A stretch of DNA of 64,000 bases from Macrostomum lignano (taxonomy: Eukaryota): positions 124,001 to 188,000 of the forward strand of contig NIVC01000069.1 of NCBI GenBank assembly GCA_002269645.1, written 5' to 3'. The position numbers and the translations under genes are program-made. Below, in pieces: positions 2,302 to 52,617 of the stretch (position 1 is its first letter; each line of letters opens with the position of its first letter). Under the pieces are notes generated by a model. The model ran no database searches and was not told where the DNA came from. It saw nothing but the letters and a program-made list of their open reading frames with translations.

Positions 2302-2446
2302 TGTAAGTCAGTTTTAATGCAATGTTCAGCAACAAAAATCCGAAAATTAATGCATGCAGAAAAGCAGGCCACCGTTTTGTGGATTACCTATTCGTCTAAA
2401 AGTTTGACTCCATCTTCTGAGAAACTCAGCAAACAAAAAAAGCAAC

Positions 2447-5400
2447 ATGGCTCATCGCGCGCCTCTGCTGCTGTCACTGACTCTCATGATTGCCAATGTG
2501 GTGGTTGCCCTGGAAACGGCACCAACAAAATCGCCCACCACTGTTGCGGCTACTGCTGGCGCTACAGCCCAGCCGACAAGCGGGCCAAGCGCCGACGGAT
2601 TTCGCGGCCGAGTTGCCGTCGCCTGCTCCGACGGGCACCGACGCGCCGCCTTGGCCTGGTCGGAGAGCGCCGGAGAATGGCGCCAGATCCCCGGCGCCAA
2701 CAGCTGTCCGGCGTCGGAAAGCGACGCTGACGCCATCCGTGATCTGTGCCGGCGCGCCTACCCTGGTCAGCGGATCGTGAACGTGGAGCCGGCTGTGGAG
2801 CACGAAGCATTCCCCAACTGGTGCCCGCTTGACAACTCGCATCGGCGTAAGGCTGGCCAACCCTGTCCGATTCTGAATGTCCGCCCGTTCGAGTGCCTGT
2901 CCGGCCCGTTCCAGAGCCCCTCGCTGCTGGTTCCGCGCGGCTGCGAGTTCAAGCACAACTCTAGCGACACCGAGAACTGCCAGCAATACGCCTATTGGCG
3001 TACAGTTGCTAAGGACTATTGCGCCAATATCAAGCTGCCTGGAAAATGGCATTTGGATCGGTACGCACCGCTGCGACCCTGCAATCGGATGCTGAGCGCT
3101 GGCTACTTTGCCGCCGTGGAGTTTGTCTGCTGCCCTGAGGTAAAATTAGACTCAAAACGAGTTTGTTTTTTTAGATTTTGTACAAAAACTCTACACACAG
3201 CGGCTGTCGGAGTTTCTTGGATTCGCATCTATGAATTCCTTACCCCAATGTACACTCACTGCTAGCCTAGAATTCCTTACCCCAATGTACACTCACTGCT
3301 AGCCTAGAATTCCTTACCCCACTGTACACTCACTGCTAGCCTAGAATTCCTTACCCCAATGTACACTCACTGCTAGCCTAGAATTCCTTACCCCAATGTA
3401 CACTCACTGCTAGCCTAGAATTCCTTACCCCACTGTACACTCACTGCTAGCCTAGAATTCCTTACCCCACTGTACACTCACTGCTAGCCTAGAATTCCTT
3501 ACCCCACTGTACACTCACTGCTAGCCGTTAATTCCTTACCCCAATGTACACTCACTGCTAGCCTAGAATTCCTTACCCCAATGTACACTCACTGCTAGCC
3601 TAGAATTCCTTACCCCAATGTACACTTACTGCTAGCCTAGAATTCCTTACCCCACTGTACACTCACTGCTAGCCTAGAATTCCTTACCCCAATTTACACT
3701 CCTTCCTACCCTAATAAGCACCCCACCCCACCCCCGGCAGCCCGTCATCGAGGTCAGCCCGGCTAAGGTGGATCCGCCGCGCAAAGTTGCCGAGAAAAAA
3801 GCCATCGACAAGGGCATTGCCAACGCCAAAGCGGCTGCCTACGCCGCCGCCAAGGCCATAAATTCGAAGCCCATGGAACTGCAGTCGCCGTCCGATCTGC
3901 TCGGCCTTGGCAAAGACGCCGATGAAGCTCGCTACCAGCGCTACCTGACCGTGCCGACCGAGTCCGGACACTCCGAGCACGAGCGATTCCTGGGCGCTAA
4001 ACGCGGCCTTCGGCATCATCAGGTGGGTCAAAGAGAAGACTGCGTGACAGGAAGGTCAAATGTCCGAAAGATCAGCTGTCAAGACAGGGAGATTAGAGAG
4101 GACAAGACAAGGAGGTCAAAGGGGTCAAGACAGGGAGGTCAAAGGGATCAAGACTGGGAGGTCAAAGGGGTCAAGACAGGGAGGTCAAAGAGGTCAAGAC
4201 AGGGAGGTCAATGGTCAAAGGGGTCAAGACAGAGAGGTCAAAGGGGTCAAGACAGGGAGGTCAAAGAGGTCAAGACAGGGAGGTCAATGGTCAAAGGGGT
4301 CAAGACAGAGAGGTCAAAGGGGTCAAGACAGTGAGGTCAAAGAGGTCAAGACACGAAGGTCAAAGGGAACAAGACGGGGAGGTCAAAGGGGTCAAGACAT
4401 GGAGGTCAAAGGGTCAAGACAGGGAGGTCAAAGGGTCAAGACAGGGAGGTCAAAGGGGTCAAGACGGAGGTCAAAGGGATCAAGACAGGGAGGTCAAAGG
4501 GTCAAGACAGGGAGGTCAAAGGGGTCAAGACGGAGGTCAAAGGGATCAAGACAGGGAGGTCAAATAGTCAAGACAGGGAGGTCAATGGTCAAAGAGGTCA
4601 AGACAGGGAGGTCAAAGAGGTCAAGACAGGGAGGTCAATGGTCAAAGGGGTCAAAACGGAAAGGTCAAAGCAGGCCACGCAAGACGAAGAAACAAATCCA
4701 GAATCCGTAAGTCATCCAGATCGATCTCAGTTGATGTCGATGTCAATTCTTTTAAAATTCGCAGGCGATTCGCGAGAGTGCCATGGTCAAGGAGCTGCAG
4801 GAGGCCGAGTCTCGTATCCTTCGCCTGTCGCCTCGCGACCCGGAGAGCGCCCAGCGACTCCTAGACGAAGTTGAGAAACAGTTCCGACGCTCGTTTCTGT
4901 CTGTGCAACGCGAGGAGGAGGCTGAGCACGACCAGCTTGACTCGGTGCACCAGCAGCGGGTCAACCTGCTGTTTGTTGGCAAGCTGAACCACGTGAAACG
5001 ATTGCTAGCTGAATCGATTTCTGAGAAGAATGCCAAATCGGCTAAGAGATATTTCGCTCGGCTTGCCGCTCTCATTACTAAAGAGGTTTGACTTACTGTT
5101 AATCATGTACACGTACGCTGAGAGTGGCGTTTCTAAGGCACTAAACTGTCTCAAGTCTTGGCATCTCAGCACCATTCCCCTTCCCTTATCTTTTAGATGG
5201 TAGATTAGGGAGGTTGAGATGGTAGATTAGGGAGGTTGAGATGGTAGATTAGTGAGGTTGAGATGGTAGATTAGGGAGGTTGAGATGGTAGATTAGGGAG
5301 GTTGAGATGGTAGATTAGGGAGGTTGAGATGGTAGATTAGGGAGGCTGAGATGGTAGATTAGGGAGTCTGAGATGGTAGATTAGGGAGGTTGAGATGGTA

Positions 5401-8400
5401 GATTAGGAAGGTTGAGATGGTAGATTAGGGAGGCTGAGATAGTAGATTAGGGAGGCTGAGATGGTAGATTAGGGAGGTTGAGATGGTAGACTGAGTGTAG
5501 ATTGAGATGGTAGACTCAGTGTAGATTGAGATGGTAGATTAGGGAGTCTGAGATGGTAGATTAGGGAGTCTGAGATGGTAGATTAGGGAGGTTGAGATGG
5601 TAGATTAGGAAGGTTGAGATGGTAGATTAGGGAGGCTGAGATAGTAGATTAGGGAGGCTGAGATGGTAGATTAGGGAGGCTGAGATGGTAGATTAGAGAG
5701 GTTGAGATGGTAGATTAGGGAGGTTGAGATGGTAGATTAGTGAGATTGAGATGGTAGATTAGGGAGGTTGAGATGGTAGATTAGGGAGGTTGAGATGGTA
5801 GATTAGAGAGGCTGAGATGGTAGATTAGGGAGGCTGAAATGGTAGATTAGAGAGGCTGAGATGGTAGATTAGGGAGGTTGAGATGGTAGATTAGTGAGGT
5901 TGAGATGGTAGATTAGGAAGGCTGAAATGGTAGATTAGAGAGGTTGAGATGGTAGATTAATGAGGTTAAGATGGTAGATTAGGGAGGTTGAGATGGTAGA
6001 TTAGGAAGGTTGAGATGGTAGATTAGGGAGGTTGAGATGGTAGATTAGTGAGGCTGAGATAGTAGATTAGGGAGGCTGAGATGGTAGATTAGAGAGGCTG
6101 AGATGGTAGATCAGAGAGGTTGAGATGGTAGATTAGGGAGGTTGAGATGGTAGATTAGTGAGATTGAGATGGTAGATTAGGGAGGTTGAGATGGTAGATT
6201 AGGGAGGTTGAGATGGTAGATTAGAGAGGCTGAGATGGTAGATTAGGGAGGCTGAAATGGTAGATTAGAGAGGCTGAGATGGTAGATTAGGGAGGTTGAG
6301 ATGGTAGATTAGTGAGGTTGAGATGGTAGATTAGTGAGGTTGAGATGGTAGATTAGGGAGGCTGAGATGGTAGATTAGTGAGGTTGAGATGGTAGATTAG
6401 GGCGTTTGAGATGGTAGATTAGTGAGGTTGAGATGGTAGATTAGGGCGTTTGAGATGGTAGATTAGTGAGGTTGAGATGGTAGATTAGGAAGGTTGAGAT
6501 GGTAGATTAGTGAGGTTGAGATGGTAGATTAGTGAGGTTGAGATGGTAGATTAGGGAGGTTGAGATGGTAGATTAGAGAGGCTGAGATGGTAGATTAGAG
6601 AGGTTGAGATGGTAGATTAGGGAGGTTGAGATGGTAGATTAGGGAGGCTGAGATAGTAGATTAGGGAGGCTGAGATGGTAGATTAGGGAGGCTGAGATGG
6701 TAGATTAGAGAGGTTGAGATGGTAGATTACAGAGGTTGAGATGGTAGATTAGGGAGGCTGAAATGGTAGATTAGAGAGGTTGAGATGGTAGATTACAGAG
6801 GTTGAGATGGTAGATTAGGGAGGCTGAAATGGTAGATTAGAGAGGTTGAGATGGTAGATTAATGAGGTTAAGATGGTAGATTAGGGAGGTTGAGATGGTA
6901 GATTAGGAAGGTTTAGATGGTAGATTAGTGAGGTTGAGATGGTAGATTAGTGAGGCTGAGATAGTAGATTAGGGAGGCTGAGATGGTAGATTAGAGAGGC
7001 TGAGATGGTAGATCAGAGAGGTTGAGATGGTAGATTAGGGAGGTTGAGATGGTAGATTAGTGAGATTGAGATGGTAGATTAGGGAGGTTGAGATGGTAGA
7101 TTAGGGAGGTTGAGATGGTAGATTAGAGAGGCTGAGATGGTAGATTAGGGAGGCTGAAATGGTAGATTAGAGAGGCTGAGATGGTAGATTAGGGAGGCTG
7201 AAATGGTAGATTAGAGAGGTTGAGATGGTAGATTAATGAGGTTAAGATGGTAGATTAGGGAGGTTGAGATGGTAGATTAGGAAGGTTGAGATGGTAGATT
7301 AGGGAGGTTGAGATGGTAGATTAGTGAGGCTGAGATAGTAGATTAGGGAGGCTGAGATGGTAGATTAGAGAGGCTGAGATGGTAGATCAGAGAGGTTGAG
7401 ATGGTAGATTAGGGAGGTTGAGATGGTAGATTAGTGAGATTGAGATGGTAGATTAGGGAGGTTGAGATGGTAGATTAGGGAGGTTGAGATGGTAGATTAG
7501 AGAGGCTGAGATGGTAGATTAGGGAGGCTGAAATGGTAGATTAGAGAGGCTGAGATGGTAGATTAGGGAGGTTGAGATAGTAGATTAGTGAGGTTGAGAT
7601 GGTAGATTAGTGAGGTTGAGATGGTAGATTAGGGAGGCTGAGATGGTAGATTAGTGAGGTTGAGATAGTAGATTAGGGCGTTTGAGATGGTAGATTAGTG
7701 AGGTTGAGATGGTAGATTAGGGCGTTTGAGATGGTAGATTAGTGAGGTTGAGATGGTAGATTAGGAAGGTTGAGATGGTAGATTAGTGAGGCTGAGATGG
7801 TAGATTAGTGAGGTTGAGATGGTAGATTAGGGAGGTTGAGATGGTAGATTAGGGAGGCTGAGATGGTAGATTAGTGAGGTTGAGATGGTAGATTAGGGCG
7901 TTTGAGATGGTAGATTAGTGAGGTTGAGATGGTAGATTAGGGCGTTTGAGATGGTAGATTAGTGAGGTTGAGATGGTAGATTAGGAAGGTTGAGATGGTA
8001 GATTAGTGAGGTTGAGATGGTAGATTAGTGAGGTTGAGATGGTAGATTAGGGAGGTTGAGATGGTAGATTAGAGAGGCTGAGATGGTAGATTAGAGAGGT
8101 TGAGATGGTAGATTAGGGAGGTTGAGATGGTAGATTAGGGAGGCTGAAATAGTTGATTAGAGAGGTTGAGATGGTAGATTAGTGAGGTTGAGATGGTAGA
8201 TTAGAGAGGCTGAGATGGTAGATTAGAGAGGTTGAGATGGTAGATTAGAGAGGCTGAGATGGTAGATTAGTGAGGTTGAGATGGTAGATTAGAGAGGTTG
8301 AGATGGTAGATTAGGGAGGCTGAGATGGTAGATTAGAGAGGTTGAGATGGTAGATTAGTGAGGTTGAGATGGTAGATTAGGGAGGCTGAAATGGTAGATT

Positions 8401-10395
8401 AGAGAGGTTGAGATGGTAGATTAGGGAGGCTGAGATGGTAGATTAGAGAGGTTGAGATGGTAGATTAGTGAGGTTGAGATGGTAGATTAGAGAGGCTGAG
8501 ATGGTAGATTAGAGAGGTTGAGATGGTAGATTAGTGAGGTTGAGATGGTAGATTAGAGAGGCTGAGATGGTAGATTAGAGAGGTTGAGATGGTAGATTAG
8601 AGAGGCTGAGATGGTAGATTAGAGAGGTTGAGATGGTAGATTAGTGAGGTTGAGTTGGTAGATTAGTGAGGTCGAGATGATAGATTAAGGGTGTTGAGAT
8701 GGTAGACTAGGTGTAGATTAAGATGGTAGACTCAATGGTTGACAGCGGCTCTAGATCTGGTACCCTCCCCCCGCCCCTCCAGATTGTCCGCCTGGCCAAC
8801 CGGGCCAACCGCTTGTCGCCGCGCATCGGCCACGCCCACCTGGCCACTCTGCGCCGTCACGCCGACAACCTGCGCGCCGATCTGTCGACCTCCGGTGCTG
8901 ACGCTGCTCTGCGACGCCTAGTGGACTTGTCCGTCGTGTCCGGCATTCTTGCCCGCTATGAGAACGTGCTGAAAAAGGCTGATAAACTTCTGGCTGAGGC
9001 GAAGGCTTCTTCTGATGCTGCTGCTGGGGATTCTGCCGGCTCTGCCTATCCGCCAAGGTATTGCAGTAATACGCATTTATTGCCTGCTCGCATTTATGGC
9101 TCTCCATGGCTAGGGAGGGGGGGGGGTAGAAATGTAAGGCAATAAAATTGTGCGCGTGCGTGCCCAGCTGAGCTCCAGTCATAAAATAAAGCTTTCTTTT
9201 TTTACTCGTTTTTTAATTAAGATTTCTCCGGTACATTACTTTCAGTAGGTTAGTATGGTTAAGGCGAATTTCCACAATAACAAATTTTGCTTGGACCGGA
9301 TTTTGATATGGCCAAGCCCTGCTGACCTTGCCGACAGGACAGGATTTTGCTTAGCAAAGTGTTGTCTATGGCCAAGCCCTGCTGACCTTGCCGACAGGAC
9401 AGGATTTTGCTTAGCAAAGTGTTGTCTATGGCCAAGCCCTGCTGACCTTGCCGACAGGACAGGATTTTGCTTAGCAAAGTGTTGTCTATGGCCAAGCCCC
9501 GCTGACCTCGCCGGCAGGACCGGTTTTGCTTGTTGTCTATGGTAAAAACTCTGCTTCGACCAGAAGCCTTTAGCGTTCGTAGTTCGTTCCACAGTCTAGA
9601 ATATTGTCAACAATTCTGGGGCTGATCTTGCTTCTTCGCGGCAGTTGCAAATAAAGCATTGCTTCCATTCCCACTGCTTGTGACAGCCATGTCTAAATGA
9701 AAATTTAGGGGTGAAACTTTAAAGCCGCTATGGACCAAATTGATGCTTGTTGGACCAAATTAAATGGACCAAACAGTTGGATTCTTGGAATTCTCAATTC
9801 TAGACTCGCCGAGCGTTTCGACCACCTGCTCCGTCTGTACCACGAGCAGAGCGTTCGAATTCTACAGAAGGCTAAGCAACAGCACCACCACCACCGGCAC
9901 AAGCAACAGCACCATCAGGAGCTTCTGCCGCAGGCCCATCATGACGCTGGCACCAGCACCAGCAGCATCAAAGACAGGCACCGAGGCGGTCACGTCGGTC
10001 ACGACAACGATGACGATTCCTTCCACCTGCCGCCTGTCAAATCAGCTGGCGTCACTTCGCCAGAGACTGACTACTCTCAAAAATCCGTAGTCTTTGTTGT
10101 GATCTTCTGCGTGCTGGCCTTCCTGCTCACTCTAGTAGTGATCTTTGTCACTGTACGAATCTGCCGCATGGTGTACGGCGCTAACTCGCCCGCTGGCAAA
10201 GGCTACAAGCTGTCCCTGGTTGATGAGGAAGAGAAACCAGCAGCCCAGTGCGGCAATACTGCCATGTGCTGCGATGCGCCTTACAATTATCCAACTGTGC
10301 ACCCGGAGAAGGCCTGTCTGGGCGACCCGCACCTGGCTAACATGCAGATGAACGGATACGAGAATCCCACCTACAAGTTCTATGAAGAGAAGTAA
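2447..10395 (+). CDS. APP: Amyloid precursor protein family member (APP/APPL/APL-1-like), 720 aa; exons 2447-3139, 3741-4022, 4765-5085, 8783-9057, 9804-10395
   Basis: Signal peptide MAHRAPLLLSLTLMIANVVVA; E1 motifs (VAVAC, WCPL, PFECLSGPFQSPSLLVPRGCEFKH, WRTVAKDYC, FAAVEFVCCP); E2 start (EHERFLGAKRGLRHHQAIRESAMVKELQEAE); TM VVFVVIFCVLAFLLTLVVIFVTV; tail NGYENPTYKFYEE. All junctions GT-AG with matching phases (0,0,0,2); total 2163 nt = 721 codons. Confidence 0.93.
3231..3705. repeat. Minisatellite in APP intron 1, 37-bp unit CCTAGAATTCCTTACCCCAATGTACACTCACTGCTAG, ~13 copies
   Basis: Direct reading; near-perfect copies. Confidence 0.95.
4060..4670. repeat. Minisatellite in APP intron 2, ~24-bp unit GGTCAAGACAGGGAGGTCAAAGG(G)
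   Basis: Direct reading; degenerate copies. Confidence 0.9.
5195..8720. repeat. Satellite in APP intron 3, 22-bp unit GAGATGGTAGATTAGGGAGGTT, ~160 copies
   Basis: GGTAGATTAG recurs at 5221 and 5243; fills almost the whole intron. Confidence 0.97.
9307..9545. repeat. Tandem repeat in APP intron 4, 60-bp unit, ~4 copies
   Basis: TATGGCCAAGCCC recurs at 9307, 9367, 9427, 9487. Confidence 0.92.
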
Positions 10396-12039: not shown

Positions 12040-12682
12040 TATGATCATTTTGAGGTGGGTTCTATGGGAATTTTCTGGTGGATTCTATGGACGTTTTGAG
12101 GTGGATTCTATGGACATTTTGAGGTGAATTCTATAGACATTTTAGGTGGATTCTATAGATATTTTGAGGTAAGGTATATGGAGATTTTCAGGTGGATTAT
12201 ATAAACATTTTGAGGTAGATTCTATGGGAATTTTGAGGTGAATTCTATGGACATTTTGAGATGGATTCTATGGACGTTTTGAGGTGGATTCAATGGACAT
12301 TTTGAGGTGGATTCTATAGACATCTTAGGTGGATTCTATAGATATTTTGAGGTAAGGTATATAGAGATTTTCAGGTGGATTATATAAACATTTTGAGGTA
12401 GATTCTATGGACATTTTGAGGTGAATTCTATGGACATTTTGAGATGGATTCTATGGACGTTTTGAGGTGGATTCAATGGACATTTTGAGGTGGATTCTAT
12501 AGACATTTTAGGTGGATTCTATAGATATTTTGAGGTAAGGTATATGGAGATTTTCAGGTGGATTATATAAACATTTTGAGGTAGATTCTATGGACATTTT
12601 GAGGTGGATTCAATGGACATTTTGAGGTGGATTCAATGGACATTTTGAGATGGATTCTATAGACATTTTTAGGTGGATTCTA
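12040..12682. repeat. Minisatellite, ~23-bp unit GATTCTATGGACATTTTGAGGTG with a 183-bp higher-order period
   Basis: Variant GATTTTCAGG recurs at 12183, 12366, 12549. Confidence 0.88.
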
Positions 12683-12878
12683 TCAAAGCTACTTTTATTA
12701 ACATCCAATGCATGACTTCAGAATCCTGCTTAATAACAGTCGGATCATAAAATATATCAAAGCCAGCATTCTGAATGTTCAAGAGTGCAAAGAGATTGAA
12801 AGCGTCAGGGTGACCAGCTGCACAGGTGTGTGTGTGCCTTTAGCAACTAGATAATATAGAGTTGTCAGTCTCGGCACC

Positions 12879-15800
12879 ATGAGTCAGCAGCAGCAGCAGA
12901 AACTGTCCAGCACACCGGGCCTGAGTCCCGGTGGCAGCGCCAGTCCCAGTCCCAGCGGCAGCGGAATGCAGGAGCGCTACCAGCGCCTAGCAACCGAGTA
13001 CAGCAAAGCCAGACAGCAGGTTATTGTGCTGAAGAATGGCGTCCTTGAAGAGCAGAAACGAACTGGCCAGCTTACCGAGGAGTTGAACACGGCTAGGCAG
13101 ACTTTGAGAAAGCGCGAGGTTGAAGCCGACTCGCTGAACTTGTTAAATAGGCAGCTGCAGTCCAGAGTCGATCAGTTGCAGGAATCCTTGGAGTCATTGC
13201 GGCGTCTGCAGCACCAGCCTCATCAGCACAGTCCCAGCAGTGGCAAAGTCAAGGCTGCGGGTAATAAAAGTATTCGAAATTCTATTTTACGCGTACAATA
13301 CTCGACAATCTGTAATACTCTACCAGACGCATCTGTAATACTCTACCAGACGCATCTGTAATACTCTGCCAGACTCATCTGTAATACTCTACCAGACCCA
13401 TCTGTAATACTCTGCCAGACTCATCTGTAATACTCTACCAGACTCATCTGTAATACTCTACCAGACCCATCTGTAATACTCTACCATATCCATCTGTAAT
13501 CCTCTACCAGATCCATCTGTAATACTCTACCAGACCCATCTGTAATACTCTACAAGGCTCATCTGTAATACTCTACCAGATCCATCTGTAATACTCTACC
13601 ATATCCATCTGTAATCCTCTACCATATCCATCTGTAATACTCTACCAGACCCATCTGTAATACTCTACCAGACCCATCTGTAATACTCTACCATATCCAT
13701 CTGTAATCCTCTACCATATCCATCTGTAATACTCTACCAGACCCATCTGTAATACTCTACCAGACCCATCTGTAATACTCTACCATATCCATCTGTAATC
13801 CTCTACCATATCCATCTGTAATACTCTACCAGACCCATCTATAATACTCTACAAGGCTCATCTGTAATCACTAACCCAGCTGCCGCAGAAACATCTGGGG
13901 GCGCCTCCGTCCTAGAAGAGGAACTGCAGCGCAAGATCGCAGAGAACGCTCGCCTACACCAGGAACTGCTGGCCAGAGACGAAGCTGCTCAAACTGCCGC
14001 AGTTCGCTACGCCGAACAGTTGTCGGCTCTCGAGACGGCCGCGGCGTCGGCCAGAGCGGAACGAGACGCCGCCCTGGCGGAAGCCACCGAGGCTCGCCAG
14101 TCGGCAGTGGAGGAACGGGACCGCCTAGCCGCCCAGGTTGCTACCGCAGCTGGTCGCGTGGAGACGGCAACGTCCCAGTTGGCTGAGGCTCGAGCTGAGT
14201 CAGCTGGACTGCGCCGAGATGCTGAGCTGCTGTCAGGTCTGCTCAGGCACTCGGAAGAGGCTCAGGTTCGTGATCGCCTGCTCTATTTGCGGTCATGTAT
14301 TTAACGGTCCGATTTCCTTCCAGTGCATTAAATCCAAATAAAATTCCCTAGTCTTATCTTCCCTTTATCCCATGAAAGAGCAGGGATGGTTTTGTAAATT
14401 CAAGGAATTCTGTAAACACTACTTATAGTACTCTCGACACACTAAAATCCAATTCAGGTCGCCCGTCGTTGGTACGACTGGACGTCTAGCCAGACTCCCA
14501 CTCTGGTGCGGGCGCTCAAGTCGCTGGTGGACCTGCACCTGCACCTGGAGGCCCGGTTGAGAGCGGCTGGCAGCTGGACTGAGTCAGCCAGTCGCCGACT
14601 GCGGGCTTGCGTAGCTGCCACCCGGTCGCTGTGCCTGGAGCTGCCTGCGGATAGGCCAGAACTGGCCACGGATGCCCAGCTGCTGTCTCTGCTGCGTCGG
14701 TGTCCTCAGCTGGCCGACTGTCTGTCCGAACTGTCCGAACCGTTCTCGGTCGCCGTGTCAGCCGAGCATTTGTCAACTGAGCTGCAGACTTTAAATACGG
14801 AACTGTGCCAATGCTTGACAATTGAGCTGCCGAATTCGCTGCGAAATTTAGCAAGTCTGATGACTACTGCTGCGGAGGCCAAGTCCAGAAGTCAATTAGC
14901 CGATTCTATTACCCAACGATTTGCAGCACTAGCCGGTGCATGTAAAAAGCTGTATACCGCCTGCGAGAGAAAAGTCAACGCCGAATCGGCGCTCAGAGTT
15001 TCCGATGATATCGCTGCGGGTAATAAGGCGTGTCTGACCGCCGCGTCGACTCTTGTAACCAAGTTTGATCTGCTTAATACTCAGGTGAAATTCTTGACCT
15101 GCTTTTTGGGTACTAAACGGTTCTCAGTCTGAAACGAATTTAGTATATTAGACTAGCCAGTTAGCCCCTCCTTGGGCGGGGTGTTTTGTAGCATAGTCGA
15201 CAAAGTTAAGCTTGAGCATTAAAAATGTGTATTAGCCTAGCCACTTAGCCCCTTTTCGGGGGTGTGCGGCTGACAATCAAAATAGATAACCTGGTAGGCT
15301 TGAGCATTAAAAACTTAGCATAACCAAATCACATTGCATTGGATATACCTTTCCTATTCCAGGTAAGCGAGCAATGCGAGTTAATCGCTTCTCGTTTGAT
15401 GTTCGCCGCCGTGAATCTCTCGTCCGCTATTTCGGATTCAACAACCGGCCCAACGGTCGCTGCCAACGTGAATTCGTTGTCGCCTTCGCCGTCTCCTTCG
15501 TCGCCTTCAATTGCTAATGCCGCCGCTTCGGCTGCGGCGGCTGCTGCGGCAGCCGAGGCGGCTGAGGCGGCCAAGGCAGAGCTGGCCGTCCTGCGCGACG
15601 AGCTGCAGCGTGGGCAAGATCAGCTGGCTCTGATGGAGTCCCGGCTGGCAGCTCAGCAGGCTCGGATTAGCCAACTTGAAAAAGATCGAGAACGATGGAT
15701 GCTCGAAGCTCAGGTGGGTTTGCTCTATCAGTTGGAGCGATTATCCTAACCCCAGCATTAAACCGTACTAACCTAAAAATAATAATTAAGTACACCTGCT

Positions 15801-16908
15801 TACTCGGCAGATGTGCAACCGACAGCTCAGCTGAGCGCATCTGAATGCTGCGTACGGCTGATCAGTCCAAGGACTGGGGGGTCGCCACACACCCTCAATT
15901 AACCCAGCTAATGCTGGCACCCATTTTACAGCTAGGTGAACTGAAGCAATGCAGAGTTAAGTGTCTTGCTCAGGACACAGATTGTACCTAGTGGGTCGAG
16001 AATCGAACCCCCGACCTTTACGTCGCGAGTCCGACGCTCTAACCACTAGGCTTCAACCCATAACCCTAACCTGAGCATCAGTTTAAACAGCATCTCCCGA
16101 CACGTGAACCCCCACCCCTTGAAAACGTTATCATGGCAAGAATCGCTAGTCATTGCTAACAGCTCACTAAGTCACTCTAGCGACTCTAGCGCGACTCTTG
16201 TCACTTTTTAGCGACTCAAACGCTGTAATGTGACGGAGATCGAGGCGACTTTTGAATCTCAAGCGCATCACACGAGCTTTGAAACGACTCTGGACCGTTT
16301 TCATCATGGGTTCCTTTATAAAGCATGCGCCGCTTTAGGTCAGTGGTCGGCTAACTCCGGCCCACAAAGCCTCTCTATCCGGCCCGCTTCTGGGTTTAAG
16401 TCTGTTTCTAATCTCTTTTAAATCACCAAAAGAACATTACTTAACTTCTGGAATGCAGGTATTGTCTACGAGACTGGGTAAGCAGCAGCAGTCGTCTCCA
16501 TCGCCTCCCCCGGCGCAGCAGCAGCAGCAGTCGACCCCCCCGTCCGCAGTCCCAGACGGTGACCAGTCATCAGCAGTTGCTCAGTTGCGAGCGAATTTTC
16601 TCGAAGCCAAGTGCACCGAGTCTGAGGCGTCGCTGCAGCTGCTGGACTCTCGTCTGATGCACGCGCAACTGTCAGCAAAGACAGCCAATCAGCGACTTGT
16701 GCTGGCACTGAACGAAGCTGCCAGCTTGAAGGACGCGGCCTTCCAGTGCAGAGAAGAGCTGGACACAACCCGTCGGAATTATGAGGAGCAACTGGCCGCC
16801 ATCTCTGATCACGTTGGCGAGCTCAACAGGCAGTTGGAACGAAAAGAGGACGAGTTGAACGGATTAAGGGCTCAGTTTTCGTCTACCGTGGCTAAGAAAA
16901 AGCGATGA
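12879..16908 (+). CDS. PPP1R21: Protein phosphatase 1 regulatory subunit 21 (FERRY Fy-2, KLRAQ-domain coiled-coil), ~731 aa; exons 12879-13260, 13880-14265 (alt. start 13889), 14458-15084, 15363-15713, 16459-16908
   Basis: N-terminal RYQRLATEYSKARQQVIVLKNGVLEEQ (KLRAQ domain), VLEEELQRKIAENARLH, and C-terminal TTRRNYEEQLAAISDHVGELNRQL (TTKRSYEDQ motif) match PPP1R21 as I recall it. Junction phases 1,0,0,0; 2196 nt = 732 codons. Confidence 0.88.
13309..13868. repeat. Minisatellite in PPP1R21 intron 1, 23-bp unit ATCTGTAATACTCTACCAGACCC
   Basis: Direct reading; ends immediately before the CTAAC branch point and CAG acceptor. Confidence 0.95.
15775..16056 (-). mobile_element. tRNA-derived SINE with a CORE-like central domain, antisense in PPP1R21 intron 4
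   Basis: Minus strand: A box AGCCTAGTGGTTAGAGCG, B box GGTTCGATTC, then TGTGTCCTGAGCAAGACACTTAACTCTGCATTGCTTCAGTTCACCTAGCTGTAAAATGGG (resembles the MIR/CORE consensus), and a TTATTATTTTT tail. Confidence 0.75.
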
Positions 16909-17114
16909 TCTATAAATTTATTCATTGTTTGAAATACAGAACGCTCTCTTCCAAATGTACTTAAAGTTGGCCATTTTCTGGCGATTTTGTCCAAAATTCA
17001 TATATCTAGCCACCTGATTTCAATGTAGAATTATTATAGTCAATAATTCATCCAGTGGTAATTTTCTGTTTAGTTAAGTTTGTGTAATTATTGTGGTGTA
17101 TAATCTGGGCTTAA

Positions 17115-17437
17115 CCCCACTGTACACTTCATAGCCCCACAAACCCTACCCCCAATGTACACTCCCTGGCCTAGCCCTAGCCTCGCTAACCCTAACCCCA
17201 ATTTAAACTCCCAGGCCTAACCCCTACCCCAATGTACACTCCCTGGCATAGCCTCACAAACCCTACCCCCAATGTACACTCCCTGGCCTAGCCTCGCTAA
17301 CCCTACCCCCAATGTACACTCCCTGGCCTAGCCTCGCTAACCCTACCCCAATGTACACTCCCTGGCCTAACCCCTACCCCCAATGTACACTCCCTGGCCT
17401 AGCCTCAAAAACCCTACCCCCAATGTACACTCCCTGC
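17115..17437. repeat. Degenerate C-rich minisatellite with core CCCCAATGTACACTCCCTGGCCTA
   Basis: Direct reading; same core as the arrays at 3231-3705 and 18340-18800. Confidence 0.88.
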
Positions 17438-18339
17438 CTCACAATATTTAAAATTGGATAATTGTTATATGCAATACATATAAGCCTCAATAATGCTAGA
17501 AAAATTTTATTGAATAAAAAATATTTTCTTGATTAGCAAAACAAAATCTTTTTTTGTGCCTAACGATTACTGTTCCTGTTTATGCTACGGACTCTATGTA
17601 GCTCTCTTACTACACTGATTATTTAAATTGACATTAACTGCAACTGAGTTTACAATCTCCTTTCAATTCCAGTTTTTTTATTAAGCCTATTAGCTAGGCT
17701 TTAATCTTAACCATTCTTCTTGGACTTAGAAGTGTATCTGGCTTCTACGCTCGTACATAATCGCTAATGCATAGCAAACTAACGCGATACTTTAAATAAC
17801 TTAATTTTCATTTTGCATTGCCTTGCCAATCCAATCATCATATCCATTGACGAACAATTCGAAGAAAAAGCCGCCAAGTCAACCATTTTGTTCCTGAATA
17901 ATTGTCGATCAATCGATCATTGTGATCCCATAACCACTTAGTCAAAGTTGATTGGAAAGTTTGCTAGTTAATCGTTAATGTGGATCTGTTAGTATTTTTA
18001 TATATTCAATTAAATGGTCAGATTAATGTTGAGTTACTAAACACGGTATGTAAAGCTAGACTTTAGATATTTATTGTCTTTGTAATTGTCGTTTATAAGT
18101 GTTTCTTCAATGTCTTTCATTTTTTTATATTAGTAGAAATTAGCGTGCATTAAAACAGATAAAAAACGTTTGACAGGAGTTTACTTTAACTATATGAACA
18201 CAACTAAAGGCATCTGTGCAGATTTTTAAAATAACTGGAAAGTTCACCGGTTGAAAATTTACAACTACACAAAACATTACAAGCTGTGCTCCTATGTGCA
18301 TCCCCGGATCATAGCTAGAAAACTTTACCTCAAGACAAG

Positions 18340-18800
18340 CCCCACAAACCCTACCCTTAAATGTGCAATTCCTGGCCTAGCCTCTCAAACCCTATTCCCG
18401 ATTTACACTCCCTGGCCTAGTGTCAAACACCCTAACCCTAAATGTACATTCACTGGCCAAACCCTATTCCAAATATACACTCTTTGCCCTAGCCTCTCAA
18501 ACCCTAACCCCGATGTACACTCCCTGGCCTAACCCCTACCCCCAATGTACACTCCCTGGCCTAACCCCTACCCCCAATGTACACTCCCTGGCCTAACCCC
18601 GCCTAACCCCAATGTACAATCCCTGGCCTAACCCCTACCCCCAATGTACACTCCCTGGCCTAACCCCTACCCCCAATGTACACTCCCTGGCCTAACCCCT
18701 ACCCCCAATGTACACTCCCTGGCCTAACCCCTACCCCCAATGTACACTCCCTGGCCTAACCCCTACCCCCAATGTACACTCCCTGGCCTAACCTGACCTT
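18340..18800. repeat. C-rich minisatellite, 32-bp unit CCTAACCCCTACCCCCAATGTACACTCCCTGG
   Basis: Nearly pure from ~18510 to 18790; ends ~60 nt before the FAHD1 acceptor. Confidence 0.92.
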
Positions 18801-18861
18801 ATCCCCAACGTACACTTCACTACTAAGCCTCCAAAATCCCCGTTTCCCTGCTTATCTACAG

Positions 18862-19572
18862 GCCAGCATAGTCAGATCCTGCCGCAAAATTATTGCGGTC
18901 GGCCGAAACTACGCCGAGCACGCGGCCGAGCTGGGCAACCGGGTGCCAACGGAGCCGGTGATTTTCATGAAGCCCGCCTCCTCGCTGCTGCTGGAGGGCA
19001 GCGGCCCGATTCGGCTGCCGCCAAACGCTGACGAGATTCATCACGAGGTCGAAATGGCTGTGGTTATCGGCAAGCGGCTGTCTGGAATTGCAGTCACCGA
19101 CGAGGAGGCGATAGCGGCGGTGGCTGGGTACACCTTGGCATTGGATATGACGGACAGGAAGATGCAGGTGAGGGTATGCTTGGGAACAGCTGGATAATTT
19201 TCTGCGTGCATTGGGGATTTTAGGATTTACAATCTTTTTTTAATATATTTTTATTTAAGGGCCTGGTATAGAGTCTGGCGCATGACTGCGGGTCAGAGTG
19301 GAGAGGAGATGCGAGAGAAAGAAGAGAAGGGAACTGAAAAGAGACACAACCTTGAGCAGGCCGGATAGAGAGGCTTCGAGAACCAGAGTTTGCCGAGCCC
19401 TGATATAATTAATATCGATGATAATAAACTTTGAAAAATGAACTGACAGATACTAAGGAATATCTAGATAGACAAAGAGAAGTCTGGGCTGGATAGAGAC
19501 AGACAGACAGACAGACAGACAGGCAGACAGACAGACACTAAGACACTAAGACAGACAGACAGACAGACACTA

Positions 19573-19639
<67 letters not shown>

Positions 19640-20040
19640 GAGACAGACACTAAGACAGACAGACAGATAGACAGACAAACAGACGGACAGACAGACAGAC
19701 ACTAAGACAGACAGACAGACAGACAGACACTAAGACAGACAGACAGACAGACACTAAGACAGACACTGAGACATACAGACAGACAGACAGACATACATAC
19801 AGACAAACAGACGGACAGACAGACAGACACTAAGACAGACAGACAGATAGACAGACAAACAGACGGACAGACAGACAGACACTAAGACAGACAGACAGAC
19901 AGACAGACACTAAGACAGACAGACAGACAGACACTAAGACAGACACTGAGACATACAAACAGACAGACAGACATACATACAGACAAACAGACGGACAGAC
20001 AGACAGACACTAAGACAGACAGACAGACAGACAGACAGGC

Positions 20041-20077
<37 letters not shown>

Positions 20078-20088
20078 CTAAGACACTA

Positions 20089-20127
<39 letters not shown>

Positions 20128-20956
20128 GAGACAGACACTAAGACAGACAGACAGATAGACAGACATACAGACAGACAAACAGACGGACAGACAGACAGAC
20201 ACTAAGACAGACAGACAGACAGACACTAAGACAGACACTGAGACATACAGACAGACAGACAGACATACATACAGACAAACAGACGGACAGACAGACAGAC
20301 ACTAAGACAGACAGACAGACAGACAGACAGGCAGACAGACAGACACTAAGACAGACAGACAGACAGACACTAAGACAGATAGACAGACAGACAGACACTA
20401 ACACAGAACAGATGGACTCTATTGGACAGACATGGACAGGCGTCTTGAAGTACAAGCGAACTACAGTGCAAACAGAAAGTCCCCAGTAAAAGCGTTACCG
20501 TGACAAAAATCGCTAAGAGTCATGGCAGACAACTCACTAACTCTAAAACGACTCTGGGAGGCTTCTCAGCCTGGGTACCATTTTCACCTGGGTCCCTACA
20601 AAACTGTGCAGGATCGCTTGAAATCCGGCGGCCTGCCCTGGACCCTGGCCAAGTGCTTCGACACCTCTTGTCCAATCAGCGCCATGGACCCGCCAATCAA
20701 GCCGGACGCCATCGGCCCGGACACCCGCCTGTGGCTTCGCGTCAACGACCACCAGGACAGGCAGTGTGGCCAGCTCAAACAGATGCTGTTCCCGGTGCCC
20801 CGCCTGCTGGCTTTTGTTGCTCGATCGGCAATATCGATGGAGCCGGGCGATATTCTGCTGACAGGTACACCAGCTGGGGTTGGCCCGGTCAGGTCTGGTG
20901 ACGTCATCCGAGCTGGCATCGATGGACTACTGGAGATGACTTTCTCGGTAGCCTAA
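18862..20956 (+). CDS. FAHD1: FAHD1 (fumarylacetoacetate hydrolase domain protein 1; acylpyruvase / oxaloacetate decarboxylase); exons 18862-19167 and 20612-20956; initiator codon not adjacent
   Basis: [63 protein letters not shown]-like [18 protein letters not shown]. Phase-0 intron 19168-20611. First coding exon starts at CTACAG|GCC. Confidence 0.93.
19497..20402. repeat. (GACA)n microsatellite with GACACTAA interruptions in the FAHD1 intron
   Basis: Direct reading. Confidence 0.97.
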
Positions 20957-21957
20957 AAATATCAACTAATAGCATTTGCCACACGCCAAGTTAGAAAACG
21001 GCTGCATTGAAAGTTGAAAAAATGTCAACTTAAGCTCATAAAGTGGAGCGCCCGAATAACCTATGTAAACAAATGATACGTCATTTCTGCTCACAGTGAC
21101 ATCAGGAAGCTGGGTTTGGCAAAAAATGTTAAAAAATTGGACCTGGGATAGAAGAGAACAAGCAAGGAGCTGTCTCTTGAGTTATCAAGAGACAGAAGCC
21201 ACAAGGTGAGGCAGTCTGAAAAAGTGCAGTGGAGAAAGGATGGTGCAGCAGGATGGTGATTTCACAACGCCGAAAGACACCTGCCTTCCGAAACTTCATC
21301 GACTGATGATGATTTATGGCCCAAACTACCTTTGTTCTGTAGGCTTTCAACTTTGGATGACAGTTTTCTAACTGCACATGACAAAAGCAATACTGACTAC
21401 TGTTTAATGAGTAAAACTACACTGATTTTGTCTGATTATTTTGATTTTACATCTCTGTTGTTGAGGAAATAGTTAATTTATATCTTTTCTTACCGCATTG
21501 GTGCATACATATATCAATATAGTTTCTAAATAAAATCTATCTAGCTAGTGTTATTTTCAAAGGTACTAACTATGTTTAATGGTGGAAATATTGATTTGTG
21601 AAAGCTCTTTTGGATTCAAATATTTTAGTAGTTACGCGTTGATGATCAGTAAAACACATTTCGAAAATGCGTGTAAGCATAAGTGACGGCTGAGAATGAT
21701 AAAATCTGGTCATAGGTAAGTATGTAGGTAAGGCATCTGATACCCGCTCCCTGGAGGTACCTGAGTTCAATTCCGTGGTTGACCCCCCTTCACATAGGAA
21801 AAGTCTTGGTCACTGTACATCCTGCATGAGCGCTGTTCCTACGAAGTGCAAACTGAGGACGTGCTGAGGGTTCAGAGGAATGGACATGGCGCTCTTGGTT
21901 GGTGCCGAATTAGAACTTGTTGCAGATTTAGAATAGCTTTTGAAGAATTTTGTCCCA

Positions 21958-23283
21958 TGGTGCCTGTCCTGTATTTCCTGTCCTATAGTGCCTGTCCTGT
22001 ATTTCCTGTCCCATAGTGCCTGTCCTGTATTTCCTGTCCCATAGTGCTTGTCCTGTATTTCCTGTCCCATAGTGCCTGTCCTGTATTTCCTGTCCTACAG
22101 TGCCTGTCCTGTATTTCCTGTCCCATAGTGCCTGTCCTGTATTTCCTGTCCTACAGTGCCTGTCCTGTATTTCCTGTCCCATAGTGCCTGTCCTGTATTT
22201 CCTGTCCTACAGTGCCTGTCCTGTATTTCCTGTCCCATAGTGCCTGTCCTGTATTTCCTGTCCTACAGTGTCTGTCCTGTATTTCCTGTCCCATAGTGCC
22301 TGTCCTGTATTTCCTGTCCTACAGTGCCTGTCCTGTATTTCCTGTCCCATAGTGCCTGTCCTGTATTTCCTGTCCTACAGTGCCTGTCCTGTATTTCCTG
22401 TCCCATAGTGCCTGTCCTACAGTGCCTGTCCTGTATTTCCTGTCCCATAGTGCCTGTCCTGTATTTCCTGTCCTACAGTGCCTGTCCTGTATTTCCTGTC
22501 CCATAGTGCCTGTCCTGTATTTCCTGTCCTACAGTACCTGTCCTGTATTTCCTGTCCCATAGTGCCTCTCCTGTATTTCCTGTCCTACAGTGCCTGTCCT
22601 GTATTTCCTGTCCCATAGTGCCTGTCCTGTATTTCCTGTCCCATAGTGCCTGTACTGTATTTCCTGTCCCATGGTGCCTGTCCTGTATTTCCTGTCCCAT
22701 AGTGCCTGTCCTGTATTTCCTGTCCCATAGTGCCTGTCCTGTATTTCCTGTCCTACAGTGCCTGTCCTGTATTTCCTGTCCCATAGTGCCTGTCCTGTAT
22801 TTCCTGTCCTACAGTGCCTGTCCTGTATTTCCTGTCCTATAGTGCCTGTCCTGTATTTCCTGTCCCATAGTGCCTCTCCCGTATTTCCTGTCCTATAGTG
22901 CCTGTCCTACAGTGCCTGTCCTACATTTCCTGTCCTATAGTGCCTGTCCTACATTTCCTGTCCTATAGTACTTATCCTATAGTGCTTGTCCTATAGTGCC
23001 TGTCTTTTTGTACCTGTCTTTTAGTGCCTGTCTTTTAGTGTCCTGTCCTTTAGTGCCCTGTCCTATAGTGCCTGTCTTTTAGTGCCTGTCTTTCAGTGCC
23101 CTGCCTTATAGTGCCTGTCCTATAGTGTCTGTCTTTCAGTGCCCTGCCTTATAGTGCCTGTCCTATAGTGCCTGTCTTTTAGTGCCCTGCCTTATAGTGC
23201 CTGTCCTATAGTGCCTGTCTTTTAGTGCCCTGTCCTATAGTGCCTGTCCTATAGTGCCTGTCCTATAGTGCCTGTCCTATAGT
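21958..23283. repeat. Minisatellite, 28-bp unit GTGCCTGTCCTGTATTTCCTGTCCCATA, grading into a 14-bp unit GTGCCTGTCCTATA
   Basis: Direct reading; transition near 22900-22960. Confidence 0.95.
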
Positions 23284-23299
23284 GGCCTCTCCACCTACG

Positions 23300-27235: not shown

Positions 27236-30200
27236 ATGCAATCTATCCATAATAGACACAAATCTATCCATTATCGAATTGAATCTATCCATTATCGAAT
27301 TGAATCTATCCATTATCCAATTGAATCTGTCCATTATCCATTATCGAATTGAATCTATCCATTATCCAATTGAATCTGTCCATTATCCATTATCTAATTG
27401 AATCTATCCATAATAGACACAAATCTATCCATTATCGAATTGAATCTATCCATTATCCAATTGAATCTATCCATTATCCATTATCCAATTGAATATATCC
27501 ATAATAGACACAAATCTATCCATTATCGAATTGAATCTATCCATTATCCAATTGAATCTATCCATTAACCAATTGAATCTATCCATTATCCAATTGAATC
27601 TATCTATTAACCAATTGAATCTATCCATTATCCAATTGAATCTATCCATCATCGAATTGAATCTATCCATTATTCAATTGAATCTATCCCTTATCTAATT
27701 GAATCTATCCATTATCCAATTGAATCTATCCATTATCGAATTGAATCTATCCATTATCCAATTGAATCTATCCATTATCCAATTGAATCTATCCATCATC
27801 GAATTGAATCTATCCATTATTCAATTGAATCTATCCCTTATCTAATTGAATCTATCCATTATCGAATTGAATCTATCCATCATCGAATTGAATCTATCCA
27901 TTATTCAATTGAATCTATCCCTTATCTAATTGAATCTATCCATTATCCAATTGAATCTATCCATTATCGAATTGAATCTATCCATTATCCAATTGAATCT
28001 ATCCATTATCCAATTGAATCTATCCATCATCGAATTGAATCTATCCATTATTCAATTGAATCTATCCCTTATCTAATTGAATCTATCCATTATCGAATTG
28101 AATCTATCCATCATCGAATTGAATCTATCCATTATTCAATTGAATCTATCCCTTATCTAATTGAATCTATCCCTTATCGAATTGAATCTATCCATTATCC
28201 AATTGAATCTATCCATCATCGAATTGAATCTATCCATTATTCAATTGAATCTATCCCTTATCTAATTGAATCTATCCATTATCCAATTGAATCTATCCAT
28301 TATCGAATTGAATCTATCCATTATCCAATTGAATCTATCCATTATCCAATTGAATCTATCCATCATCGAATTGAATCTATCCATTATTCAATTGAATCTA
28401 TCCCTTATCTAATTGAATCTATCCATTATCCAATTGAATCTATCCATTATCGAATTGAATCTATCCATTATCCAATTGAATCTATCCATTATCGAATTGA
28501 ATCTATCCATTATCCAATGGAATCTATCCATTATCGAATTGAATCTATCCATTATCCAATTGAATCTATCCATTATCCAATTGAATCTATCCATTAACCA
28601 ATTGAATCTATCCATTATCCAATTGAATCTATCCATTAACCAATTGAATCTATCCATTATCCAATTGAATCTATCCATTAACCAATTGAATCTATCCATT
28701 ATCCAATTGAATCTATCCATCATCGAATTGAATCTATCCATTAACCAATTGAATCTATCCATTATCCAATTGAATCTATCCATTATCCAATTGAATCTAT
28801 CTATTAACCAATTGAATCTATCCATTATCCAATTGAATCTATCCATCATCGAATTGAATCTATCCATTATTCAATTGAATCTATCCCTTATCTAATTGAA
28901 TCTATCCATTATCCAATTGAATCTATCCATCATCCAATGGAATCTATCCATTATCCAATGGAATCTATCCATTATCCAATGGAATCTATCCATTATCCAA
29001 TTGAATCTATCCATTATCCAATGGAATCTATCCATTATCCAATGGAATCAATCCATCATCCAATGGAATCTATCCATCATCCAATGGAATCTATCCATTA
29101 TGCAATTGAATCTATCCATCATCCAATGGAATCTATCCATTATCCAATGGAATCTATCCATTATCCAATTGAATCTATCCATTATCCAATGGAATCTATC
29201 CATTATCCAATGGAATCTATCCATTATCCAATGGAATCTATCCATCATCCAATGGAATCTATCCATCATCCAATGGAATCTATCCATTATGCAATTGAAT
29301 CTATCCATCATCCAATGGAATCTATCCATTATCCAATGGAATCTATCCATTATCCAATGGAATCTATCCATTATCCAATGGAATCTATCCATTATCCAAT
29401 TGAATCTATCCATCATCCAATGGAATCTATCCATTATCCAATTGAATCTATCCATTATCCAATGGAATCTATCCATTATCCAATGGAATCTATCCAATAT
29501 GCAATTGAATTTATCCATTATCCAATTGAATCTATCTATCATCCAATGGAATCTATCCATTATGCAATTGAATCTATCCATCATCCAATGGAATATATCC
29601 ATTATCTAATTGAATCTATCCATTATGCAATTGAATTTGTCCATCATCCAATTGAATCTATCCATTATCCAATTGAATCTATCCATTATATCCATTATCC
29701 AATTGAATCTATCCATCATCCAATTGAATCTATCCATTATCCAATTGAATTTATCCATTATCCAATTGAATCTATCTATCATCCAATGGAATCTATCCAT
29801 TATGCAATTGAATCTATCCATCATCCAATGGAATATATCCATTATCTAATTGAATCTATCCATTATGCAATTGAATTTGTCCATCATCCAATTGAATCTA
29901 TCCATTATCCAATTGAATCTATCCATTATATCCATTATCCAATTGAATCTATCCATTATATCCATTATCCAATTGAATCTATCCATCATCCAATTGAATC
30001 TATCCATTATCCAATTGAATCTATCCATTATCCAATTGAATCTATCCATTATCCAATTTAATCTATCCATTATCCAATTGAATCTATCCATTATCCAATT
30101 GAATCTATCCATTATCCAATTGAATCTATCCATTATCCAATTGAATCTATCCATTATCCAATGGAATCTATCCATTATCCAATGGAATCTATCCATTATC

Positions 30201-31100
30201 CAATGGAATCTATCCATCATCCAATGGAATCTATCCATCATCCAATGGAATCTATCCATTATGCAATTGAATCTATTCATCATCCAATGGAATCTATCCA
30301 TTATCCAATGGAATCTATCCATTATCCAATGGAATCTATCCATTATCCAATGGAATCTATCCATTATCCAATGGAATCTATCCAATATGCAATTGAATTT
30401 ATCCATTATCCAATTGAATCTATCTATCATCCAATGGAATCTATCCATTATGCAATTGAATCTATCCATCATCCAATGGAATATATCCATTATCTAATTG
30501 AATCTATCCATTATGCAATTGAATTTGTCCATCATCCAATTGAATCTATCCATTATCCAATTGAATCTATCCATCATCCAATTGAATCTATCCATTATCC
30601 AATTGAATCTATCCATTATCCAATTGAATCTATCCATTATCCAATTGAATCTATCCATTATCCAATTGAATCTATCCATTATCCAATTGAATCTATCCAT
30701 TATCCAATTGAATCTATCCATTATCCAATTGAATCTATCCATCATCGAATTGAATCTATCCATTATTCAATTGAATCTATCCCTTATCTAATTGAATCTA
30801 TCCATTATCCAATTGAATCTATCCATCATCCAATGGAATCTATCCATTATCCAATTGAATCTATCCCTTATCTAATTGAATCTATCCATCATCCAATGGA
30901 ATCTATCCATCATCCAATGGAATCTATCCATTATCCAATTGAATCTATCCCTTATCTAATTGAATCTATCCATCATCCAATTGAATCTATCCATCATCCA
31001 ATGGAATCTATCCATTATCCAATTGAATCTATCCCTTATCTAATTGAATCTATCCATCATCCAATGGAATCTATCCATTATCTAATTGAATCTACCCACT
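27236..31100. repeat. Satellite, 21-bp unit AATTGAATCTATCCATTATCC, ~180 copies with variant blocks
   Basis: Direct reading; source of the NLSIIQL / ESIHYP / MDRFNW pseudo-ORFs. Confidence 0.97.
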
Positions 31101-31507
31101 ATCCGCTTAAATGTATCTATTATTCAAAAAATCATATTTGGCAGTGCATTTCATAATTTTATTCATTTGTACCGACCAGAAAACTCTGTGTCGGAATGTT
31201 CCCTTCTCTTTTTCTCTCTCTCCTCGTCATGTCGGTCTGTACCCGATTGCCACCCAGTGACTGCTTCTCATCTCTTCCTCATCCGGCACAGGGCAGAGCA
31301 ATGGCGCCGTGCACTGTCCAATCAGCTCCCAAATCGATTCTCCAGCTGAGGTGGGTGTCGCTCTGATCCCCAGAGCTTATGCAGATAAAAAATGGTCCCG
31401 AGACAGTTTCATTGTTTAAAATACCCGGATGGCATTTTGGATGCCATTTTTTCCAGCCAGCAGTCAGAAACCGACGCTAATTCTCCTTTTGTGCCGAGAG
31501 TTGAAGC

Positions 31508-48269
<16,762 letters not shown>

Positions 48270-48294
48270 GTGAGTACGAAGACTCTTGCCAATG

Positions 48295-52415: not shown

Positions 52416-52617
52416 ATTAATCTGATTTGTTATAACAAAAACACGAAAGTATTGTGTTATAAATAAATATAACAAAACTATGACAGACAATTGAGGATTC
52501 CTGGGATAAATTGAAAGCAAGGAAACATAATAGGAAATAATAGTAATACGAAGTTGATTAATTAATTATCGTAGTACTACGCACAAGGAAAGAATGAACA
52601 CTCCTTAACACGCCTGT

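Follow-up and report, generated by a model that had tools for sequence, protein, structure and literature searches.

The FAHD1 gene of Macrostomum lignano very probably lacks its own start codon and takes its AUG from the spliced leader (SL) that is added to its mRNA. The gene lies in a stretch of 64,000 nucleotides of contig NIVC01000069.1 (hereafter the window), where the start codon of the full FAHD1 would be absent from the locus and the full-length enzyme could be translated only with the help of trans-splicing. Under the proposed mechanism, the FAHD1 pre-mRNA would carry an AUG-laden, minisatellite-rich outron, or else an intercistronic spacer following the upstream gene PPP1R21, that ends at CTACAG (18856-18861), and the spliceosome would join the 35-nt SL to position 18862. 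The last three bases of the SL, AUG, would then fall in phase 0 directly 5' of GCC AGC and act as the initiator, and the product would be a FAHD1 of 217 residues (oxaloacetate decarboxylase/tautomerase, FAA_hydrolase fold). SL-joined transcripts at the FAHD1 junction are shown indirectly, in two paralogous copies of the gene; ribosomes would be expected to initiate at the SL AUG, and the copy in the window is presumably expressed.

FAHD1 consists of two coding exons on the forward strand, separated by a single intron. Coding exon 1 (18862-19167, 102 codons ending in KMQ) has no Met at its start and terminates at the donor CAG/GTGAGG, the GTGAG of which agrees with the M. lignano cis-donor motif GT[G/A]AG. 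The intron (19168-20611, + strand, GTGAGG...TGTGCAG) is 1444 nt long, mostly an (AGAC)n-based microsatellite, and coding exon 2 (20612-20956) follows the acceptor TGTGCAG with 114 codons up to 20953 and the stop codon TAA at 20954-20956. The genomic codons therefore number 102 + 114 = 216 without an initiator Met, or 217 with one Met added. Within the intron, the (AGAC)n-based microsatellite extends over 900 nt (19497-20397) and has a 28/52-nt higher-order structure. Positions 18840-18900 of the window read ccgtttccctgcttatctacag/GCCAGCATAGTCAGATCCTGCCGCAAAATTATTGCGGTCGGCCGAAACTAC, the slash marking the junction of acceptor and exon 1; at closer range the junction is ...ccccgtttccctgcttatctacag/GCC AGC ATA GTC..., with the AG at 18860-18861, the first codon at 18862, and exon 1 in phase 0 relative to an ATG put immediately 5' of 18862. 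An earlier, sequence-only reading of this DNA had the first coding exon begin at CTACAG/GCC AGC ATA, at 18862, in phase 0 and without a Met, and both the coordinates and the sequence were confirmed.

The protein encoded from this exon boundary is close to complete. Nine residues (ASIVRSCRK) stand ahead of the motif IIAVGRNY, and the Pfam FAA_hydrolase domain (PF01557) spans residues 9-215 of 216 and profile positions 1-213 of 214, a full-length match at 187.1 bits against a curated threshold of 23.9 that leaves only 8 residues 5' of the domain in the genomic frame; the sequence-only reading had likewise proposed that little beyond a Met is missing. We take the metal-binding acidic triad of human FAHD1 to be E71, E73, and D102. 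Human FAHD1 (PDB 6FOG) is matched by the window protein with E = 7e-56, and residues E63, E65, and D96, which are invariant in the alignment of FAHD1 orthologues, lie opposite positions 71, 73, and 102 of 6FOG. The M. lignano protein thus resembles human FAHD1 in its full-length PF01557 domain and its conserved metal-binding positions and differs in an N-terminus that is shorter by approximately nine residues and in a start codon that would have no cis encoding. In the orthologue alignment, homology begins right at the 18861/18862 acceptor, and because of this coincidence and the fit of CTACAG to the trans-splice acceptor motif of the species, the placement of the exon boundary at the acceptor is more than chance.

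Macrostomum lignano has a single SL of 35 nt, CGGTCTCTTACTGCGAAGACTCAATTTATTGCATG, which ends in ATG (PMC8629364) and of which a longer form is given in PMC5173321. Approximately 30% of the genes of this species are trans-spliced, with [T/C]TNCAG as the trans-splice acceptor motif and GT[G/A]AG as the top donor motif (PMC8629364). The CTACAG at 18856-18861 agrees with the acceptor motif and closes a pyrimidine-rich tract and 3' splice (trans-splice) acceptor (18831-18861, + strand, ...CCCCGTTTCCCTGCTTATCTACAG) that is the same in L002, a paralogous locus on NIVC01000068.1. When the SL, exon 1, and exon 2 were joined in silico, with ...CAATTTATTGCATG as the SL 3' end at the FAHD1 junction in the SL-tagged form, they yielded one open ORF of 217 codons reading MASIVRSC..., as had been foreseen for an SL AUG joined to 18862. 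The FAHD1 of Schistosoma begins MSRNLKDICRKIV, and in the alignment the SL-derived Met lies no more than one residue away from the Met of the Schistosoma protein; internal Mets in the over-extended models from Calicophoron and Paragonimus align with it as well. A search of the window for an SL RNA gene, in which the complete SL was allowed as many as 3 mismatches, returned 0 matches. The sole exact occurrence of TTATTGCATG, the last ten bases of the SL, is at 49581-49590 on the reverse strand and was set aside as chance, as the sequence around it is AT-rich and non-coding and stop codons soon follow.

The SL holds a single ATG, and the next ATG of the joined mRNA is in frame at codon 37 (MKPASS...). 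If the mRNA were trans-spliced but ribosomes passed the SL AUG and started at codon 37, a truncated protein would result, and this explanation can draw on the T at -3 of the SL AUG, a weak Kozak context, and on the later AUGs, all of which are in frame 0 over the first 650 nt. A start at codon 37, however, would cost the FAA_hydrolase domain its first 28 positions, and with them the invariant GRN of VGRNY, and codons 2-36 are conserved with orthologues, which indicates protein-level selection on them. Initiation at a flatworm SL AUG also has precedent: according to PMC9851317 and PMC12582326, in which the study is cited, Cheng, Cohen, Ndegwa & Davis (2006) demonstrated in Schistosoma mansoni that the AUG of the SL can serve as the initiator Met, a premise on which the sequence-only reading had also relied. 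We therefore regard exclusive initiation at codon 37 as unlikely, while some ribosomes might conceivably scan past the SL AUG and initiate at codon 37.

The models held in public databases break off at the same boundary. The best protein match is an M. lignano 'oxaloacetate tautomerase' at 97% identity, whose 90% cluster has five members, all of them genome-derived models, and none of these five is a Met-initiated product. One UniRef entry, A0A1I8IQL0, equals the window protein exactly apart from an additional N-terminal YLQ, encoded by the nine bases immediately 5' of the exon (TAT CTA CAG). Two GenBank proteins of the Mlig_3_7 assembly, PAA58904.1 (Mlig029346g1) and PAA91958.1 (Mlig024435g3), are labelled 'partial' and have ASIVRSC as their first residues, and the annotated CDSs of the paralogous loci L001 (NIVC01002321.1) and L002 have as their first base the first base 3' of the acceptor. 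In the Mlig_3_7 annotation, transcripts were cut at peaks of SL reads before ORFs were called by TransDecoder (PMC5730564). The UniProt models A0A1I8IQL0, A0A1I8H8P3, and A0A1I8GFR5 all begin with YLQ, nine bases 5' of the acceptor (18853-18861), and at this start site the genomic sequence (TTATCTACAG) has TTAT...G in common with the SL 3' end (TTATTGCATG); the YLQ models may derive from transcripts that carried the SL, with the alignment running into the outron. The supplements of PMC5730564, PMC8629364, and PMC5816591 contained no trans-splicing entry for Mlig029346, Mlig024435, or FAHD1, and our literature search found no paper linking M. lignano with FAHD1.

As M. lignano has several near-identical copies of FAHD1, among which the window copy is distinguished by the diagnostic codons for EMAVV, SGIAV, and HQDRQC, the copy studied here could be a silent or decaying paralogue in a polyploid genome, in which case the SL-donated start would be valid for L001 and L002 only. 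In keeping with this, the 90% cluster includes no GenBank protein for the window allele, and the intron of this copy is swollen by the microsatellite (1444 nt vs 594 nt in L001). Against it, the ORF is intact, the residues matching human metal-binding E71, E73, and D102 are retained, and the acceptor and its flanks are the same as in L002, and we consider a silent window copy improbable.

Besides these model boundaries, a further indirect trace of SL-bearing transcripts at this junction is found in the assembled sequence of L001. The bases leading to the exon are ...gcttatctacag/GCC in L002, as in the window, and ...gcttattgcatg/GCC in L001; in the alignment, L001 departs from both of the others by five contiguous substitutions, CTACA to TGCAT, with flanks that are otherwise identical. 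The change is located at 5995-5999 of L001 (NIVC01002321.1 ~66,375-66,379), homologous to window 18856-18860. With it the site reads TTATTGCATG, which directly adjoins the exon, agrees with the SL 3' end in 10/10 bases, and occurs once only within the paralogous loci compared. The Mlig_3_7 assembly was polished by Pilon with RNA-seq reads mapped by STAR, and the transcriptome-assembly step of PMC5730564 was run with STAR --alignEndsType EndToEnd; if the mapping for polishing was also EndToEnd, reads would have had to align their SL bases with the last bases of the outron. Because Mlig_3_7 was polished with RNA-seq reads, the TGCAT of L001 is most likely a polishing artefact, the imprint of SL-to-GCCAGC transcripts at exactly this junction. 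Two further observations bear on the L001 allele. The protein A0A1I8H8P3 is that of L001 but begins with YLQ, which fits TAT CTA CAG, so another annotation of this allele had the intact CTACAG. The L001 CDS is 'partial' from GCC despite the adjoining ATG, which means that its transcript model has to start at the acceptor. With the ATG at the end of the SL, the 5'-partial CDSs of the paralogues, and this imprint, the earlier proposal that the start codon comes from a trans-spliced leader is supported.

Were the TTATTGCATG of L001 instead a real allele, the SL AUG would have passed from a trans-spliced mRNA back into the genome by the copying of a few bases; the acceptor would be destroyed and the SL-dependent start would now be genome-encoded, a snapshot of escape from trans-splicing. 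We give this very little credence, and a retro-copy origin was rejected as the main reading of the L001 change since L001 retains the 594-nt intron and the assembly is RNA-polished. If overwriting by SL bases proved widespread, acceptor-motif statistics drawn from Mlig_3_7 and some start codons in it might be distorted, acceptors would be corrupted, and false genomic ATGs would have been introduced.

The region that trans-splicing would discard extends over 1954 nt on the forward strand, from the base after the stop codon of PPP1R21 to the acceptor (16908-18861), and would comprise the 3' UTR of PPP1R21 and the outron or intercistronic region of FAHD1. It contains 32 ATGs in all three frames, one AATAAA at 17513, and 0 GTRAG donors. 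The last 520 nt before the acceptor hold 11 ATGs spread over all three frames because every unit of the minisatellite found there carries AATGTAC. The leader, if left unprocessed, would be ill suited to translation; it would be removed by trans-splicing. This C-rich minisatellite was delimited by Tandem Repeats Finder at 18338-18793 (+ strand) in the outron and has units of 32-40 nt, that of the proximal array being CCCTACCCCCAATGTACACTCCCTGGCCTAAC. Its copy number varies among three genomic copies of the locus, the distance from stop codon to acceptor ranging over 1745-2194 nt, and a 4-nt indel adjoining the array alters the upstream reading frame among the copies. A second array of the same C-rich 32-40-nt minisatellite occupies 17142-17436 of the window, and both arrays in the PPP1R21-FAHD1 spacer read ...CCCCAATGTACACTCCCTGGCCTAAC.... 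The description of the in-frame upstream sequence as minisatellite in the sequence-only reading is correct for the array and fails for the proximal 68 nt (18794-18861), which are unique sequence.

A start codon brought in by a cis-spliced 5' exon had been named as an alternative in the sequence-only reading, with ATG/GTCAGA as the end of that exon. The candidate exon end (18014-18019, + strand, ATG/GTCAG(A)) is the sole ATGGT between the upstream stop codon and the acceptor; the ATG would occupy 18014-18016, GTCAGA would be spliced to the acceptor at 18861, and the phase given by the ATG/GT at 18014-18018 fits. The motif is thus present and its donor weak, as described, but it does not stand as a 5' exon. 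The C at +3 places GTCAG outside GT[G/A]AG, the top donor motif of M. lignano (PMC8629364), no GTRAG occurs in the whole 1954-nt upstream region, and the exon is missing from the published models of the paralogues, which are 5'-partial. The L001 imprint, moreover, puts TTATTGCATG against the exon in RNA and not ...TTAAATG. We consider a cis-spliced source of the start codon to be highly unlikely.

An in-frame ATG that the sequence-only reading had omitted lies in the last minisatellite unit (18772-18774, + strand), 30 codons 5' of the exon and in this copy only. The frame is open from 18760 in the window, with a TAA at 18757-18759 shortly 5' of the ATG, while L001 and L002 have four extra bases (..cctgacAGACctt..) that produce an in-frame TGA 23-24 codons upstream and leave no genomic ATG; for this reason a start at 18772 is an accident peculiar to a single copy. 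The explanation that there is no splicing at 18861 and that translation starts at 18772, in the frame open from 18760, with a 30-residue extension MYTPWPNLTLSPTYTSLLSLQNPRFPAYLQ (MYTPWPN...) on FAHD1, is most implausible, given that the 4-nt indel leaves the start unconserved even within the species, with the TGA in frame in both paralogues, that the extension is repeat-derived and resembles no orthologue N-terminus, that ten more ATGs in three frames lie within the 420 nt 5' of 18772, and that the Kozak context is weak.

FAHD1 lies downstream of two genes of the same orientation. An APP-like gene lies within about 2408-10392 of the window (2408-3262 and 9715-10392, + strand; Pfam APP_N, APP_Cu_bd, and APP C-terminus), and the PPP1R21/KLRAQ gene follows at 12877-16907 (+ strand) with its own ATG, a stop codon TGA at 16905-16907, and Pfam KLRAQ and PPP1R21_C on its exons. 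The 731-aa CDS of PPP1R21 was rebuilt by splice-site enumeration, which gave five ambiguous models, and PPP1R21 is a called gene in the paralogous loci L001 and L003; positions 1-5928 of L001 align to window 12651-18598 with 98.7% identity. A PPP1R21 protein of M. lignano annotated in GenBank was not recovered by homology search with exonic queries, although the FAHD1 proteins of that assembly were; this appears to reflect incomplete indexing and not a biological difference. The order of the three consecutive + strand genes (APP-like, PPP1R21, FAHD1) is also annotated in NIVC01000068.1, where the tag of FAHD1, Mlig024435g3, agrees with its third place in the run; the APP-like orthologue on that contig is annotated with 719 aa and is the first of the three same-strand genes.

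On the basis of this arrangement, PPP1R21 may precede FAHD1 as a cistron of one polycistronic unit, and gene order together with the tag ending in g3 is suggestive of FAHD1 as the third gene of such a unit. The locus resembles nematode and flatworm operons, whose downstream genes are resolved by SL trans-splicing, in its consecutive same-strand genes (APP-like, PPP1R21, and FAHD1) and differs from them in the length of the spacer, which measures ~2 kb from the PPP1R21 stop codon to the FAHD1 acceptor. When adjusted for repeats, and if the 3' UTR ends near the AATAAA at 17513, the spacer is ~0.9 kb and falls below the operon threshold of 1 kb (PMC8629364).

Repeats are also abundant elsewhere in the window. 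A 1.3-kb tandem array (21951-23292) with a 28-nt unit and a 112-nt higher-order unit lies ~1 kb 3' of the stop codon of FAHD1 and occurs in L001 as well. Very long tandem arrays occupy 27600-31150, 33560-36500, 37700-38870, 41900-45000, 48270-49360, and 52600-53620; they give repetitive translations in several frames, and satellite DNA makes up much of the window. The bin 34001-36000 has a GC skew of 1.0, with no C on the + strand. On the reverse strand, 53337-53753 is an exon of an EF-hand protein that has its own Met and resembles a calcineurin B-type subunit.

FAHD1 is a fresh example of a known flatworm mechanism, one that a specialist would expect, and not a new mechanism. All reported flatworm SLs end in AUG. 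The SL AUG is needed by more than 40 cDNAs of S. mansoni, according to the citations of the 2006 study in PMC9851317 and PMC12582326. ORFs that start at the SL AUG are named 'slORFs' in PMC9851317, and the Macrostomum genome paper (PMC10468722) marks the final ATG of the SLs as a translation start codon. By the evidence of its sequence, the FAHD1 locus appears to have every feature of this class: as in the slORFs of S. mansoni, the SL ends in AUG, the acceptor is at the first codon after the Met, and the recipient ORF is in frame and has no AUG of its own. It differs from the slORFs of S. mansoni in that M. lignano is a free-living macrostomorph, in that the gene is FAHD1, and in that the use of the AUG in translation is what we infer here. 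The locus is likewise akin to the trans-spliced genes of M. lignano described by Wudarski (2017; PMC5730564) and by Ustyantsev & Berezikov (2021; PMC8629364), with which it shares the 35-nt SL, the [T/C]TNCAG acceptor, a conserved housekeeping gene as recipient, a repeat-rich upstream spacer, and an upstream neighbour on the same strand; SL-donated start codons are undiscussed in those two papers, and the deposited models leave such genes 5'-partial.

For annotation, the consequence is that such genes are deposited as 'partial' in GenBank or with a spurious YLQ in UniProt and need no more than the SL AUG to be complete; Macrostomum gene models would be mended by supplying this AUG wherever a trans-splice site is mapped. 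For the organism, the finding would mean that a conserved mitochondrial enzyme, encoded 3' of a repeat-rich spacer with 32 AUGs, depends on trans-splicing for its translation, and the case of FAHD1 agrees with the view of the SL as a cleaner of the 5' leader.
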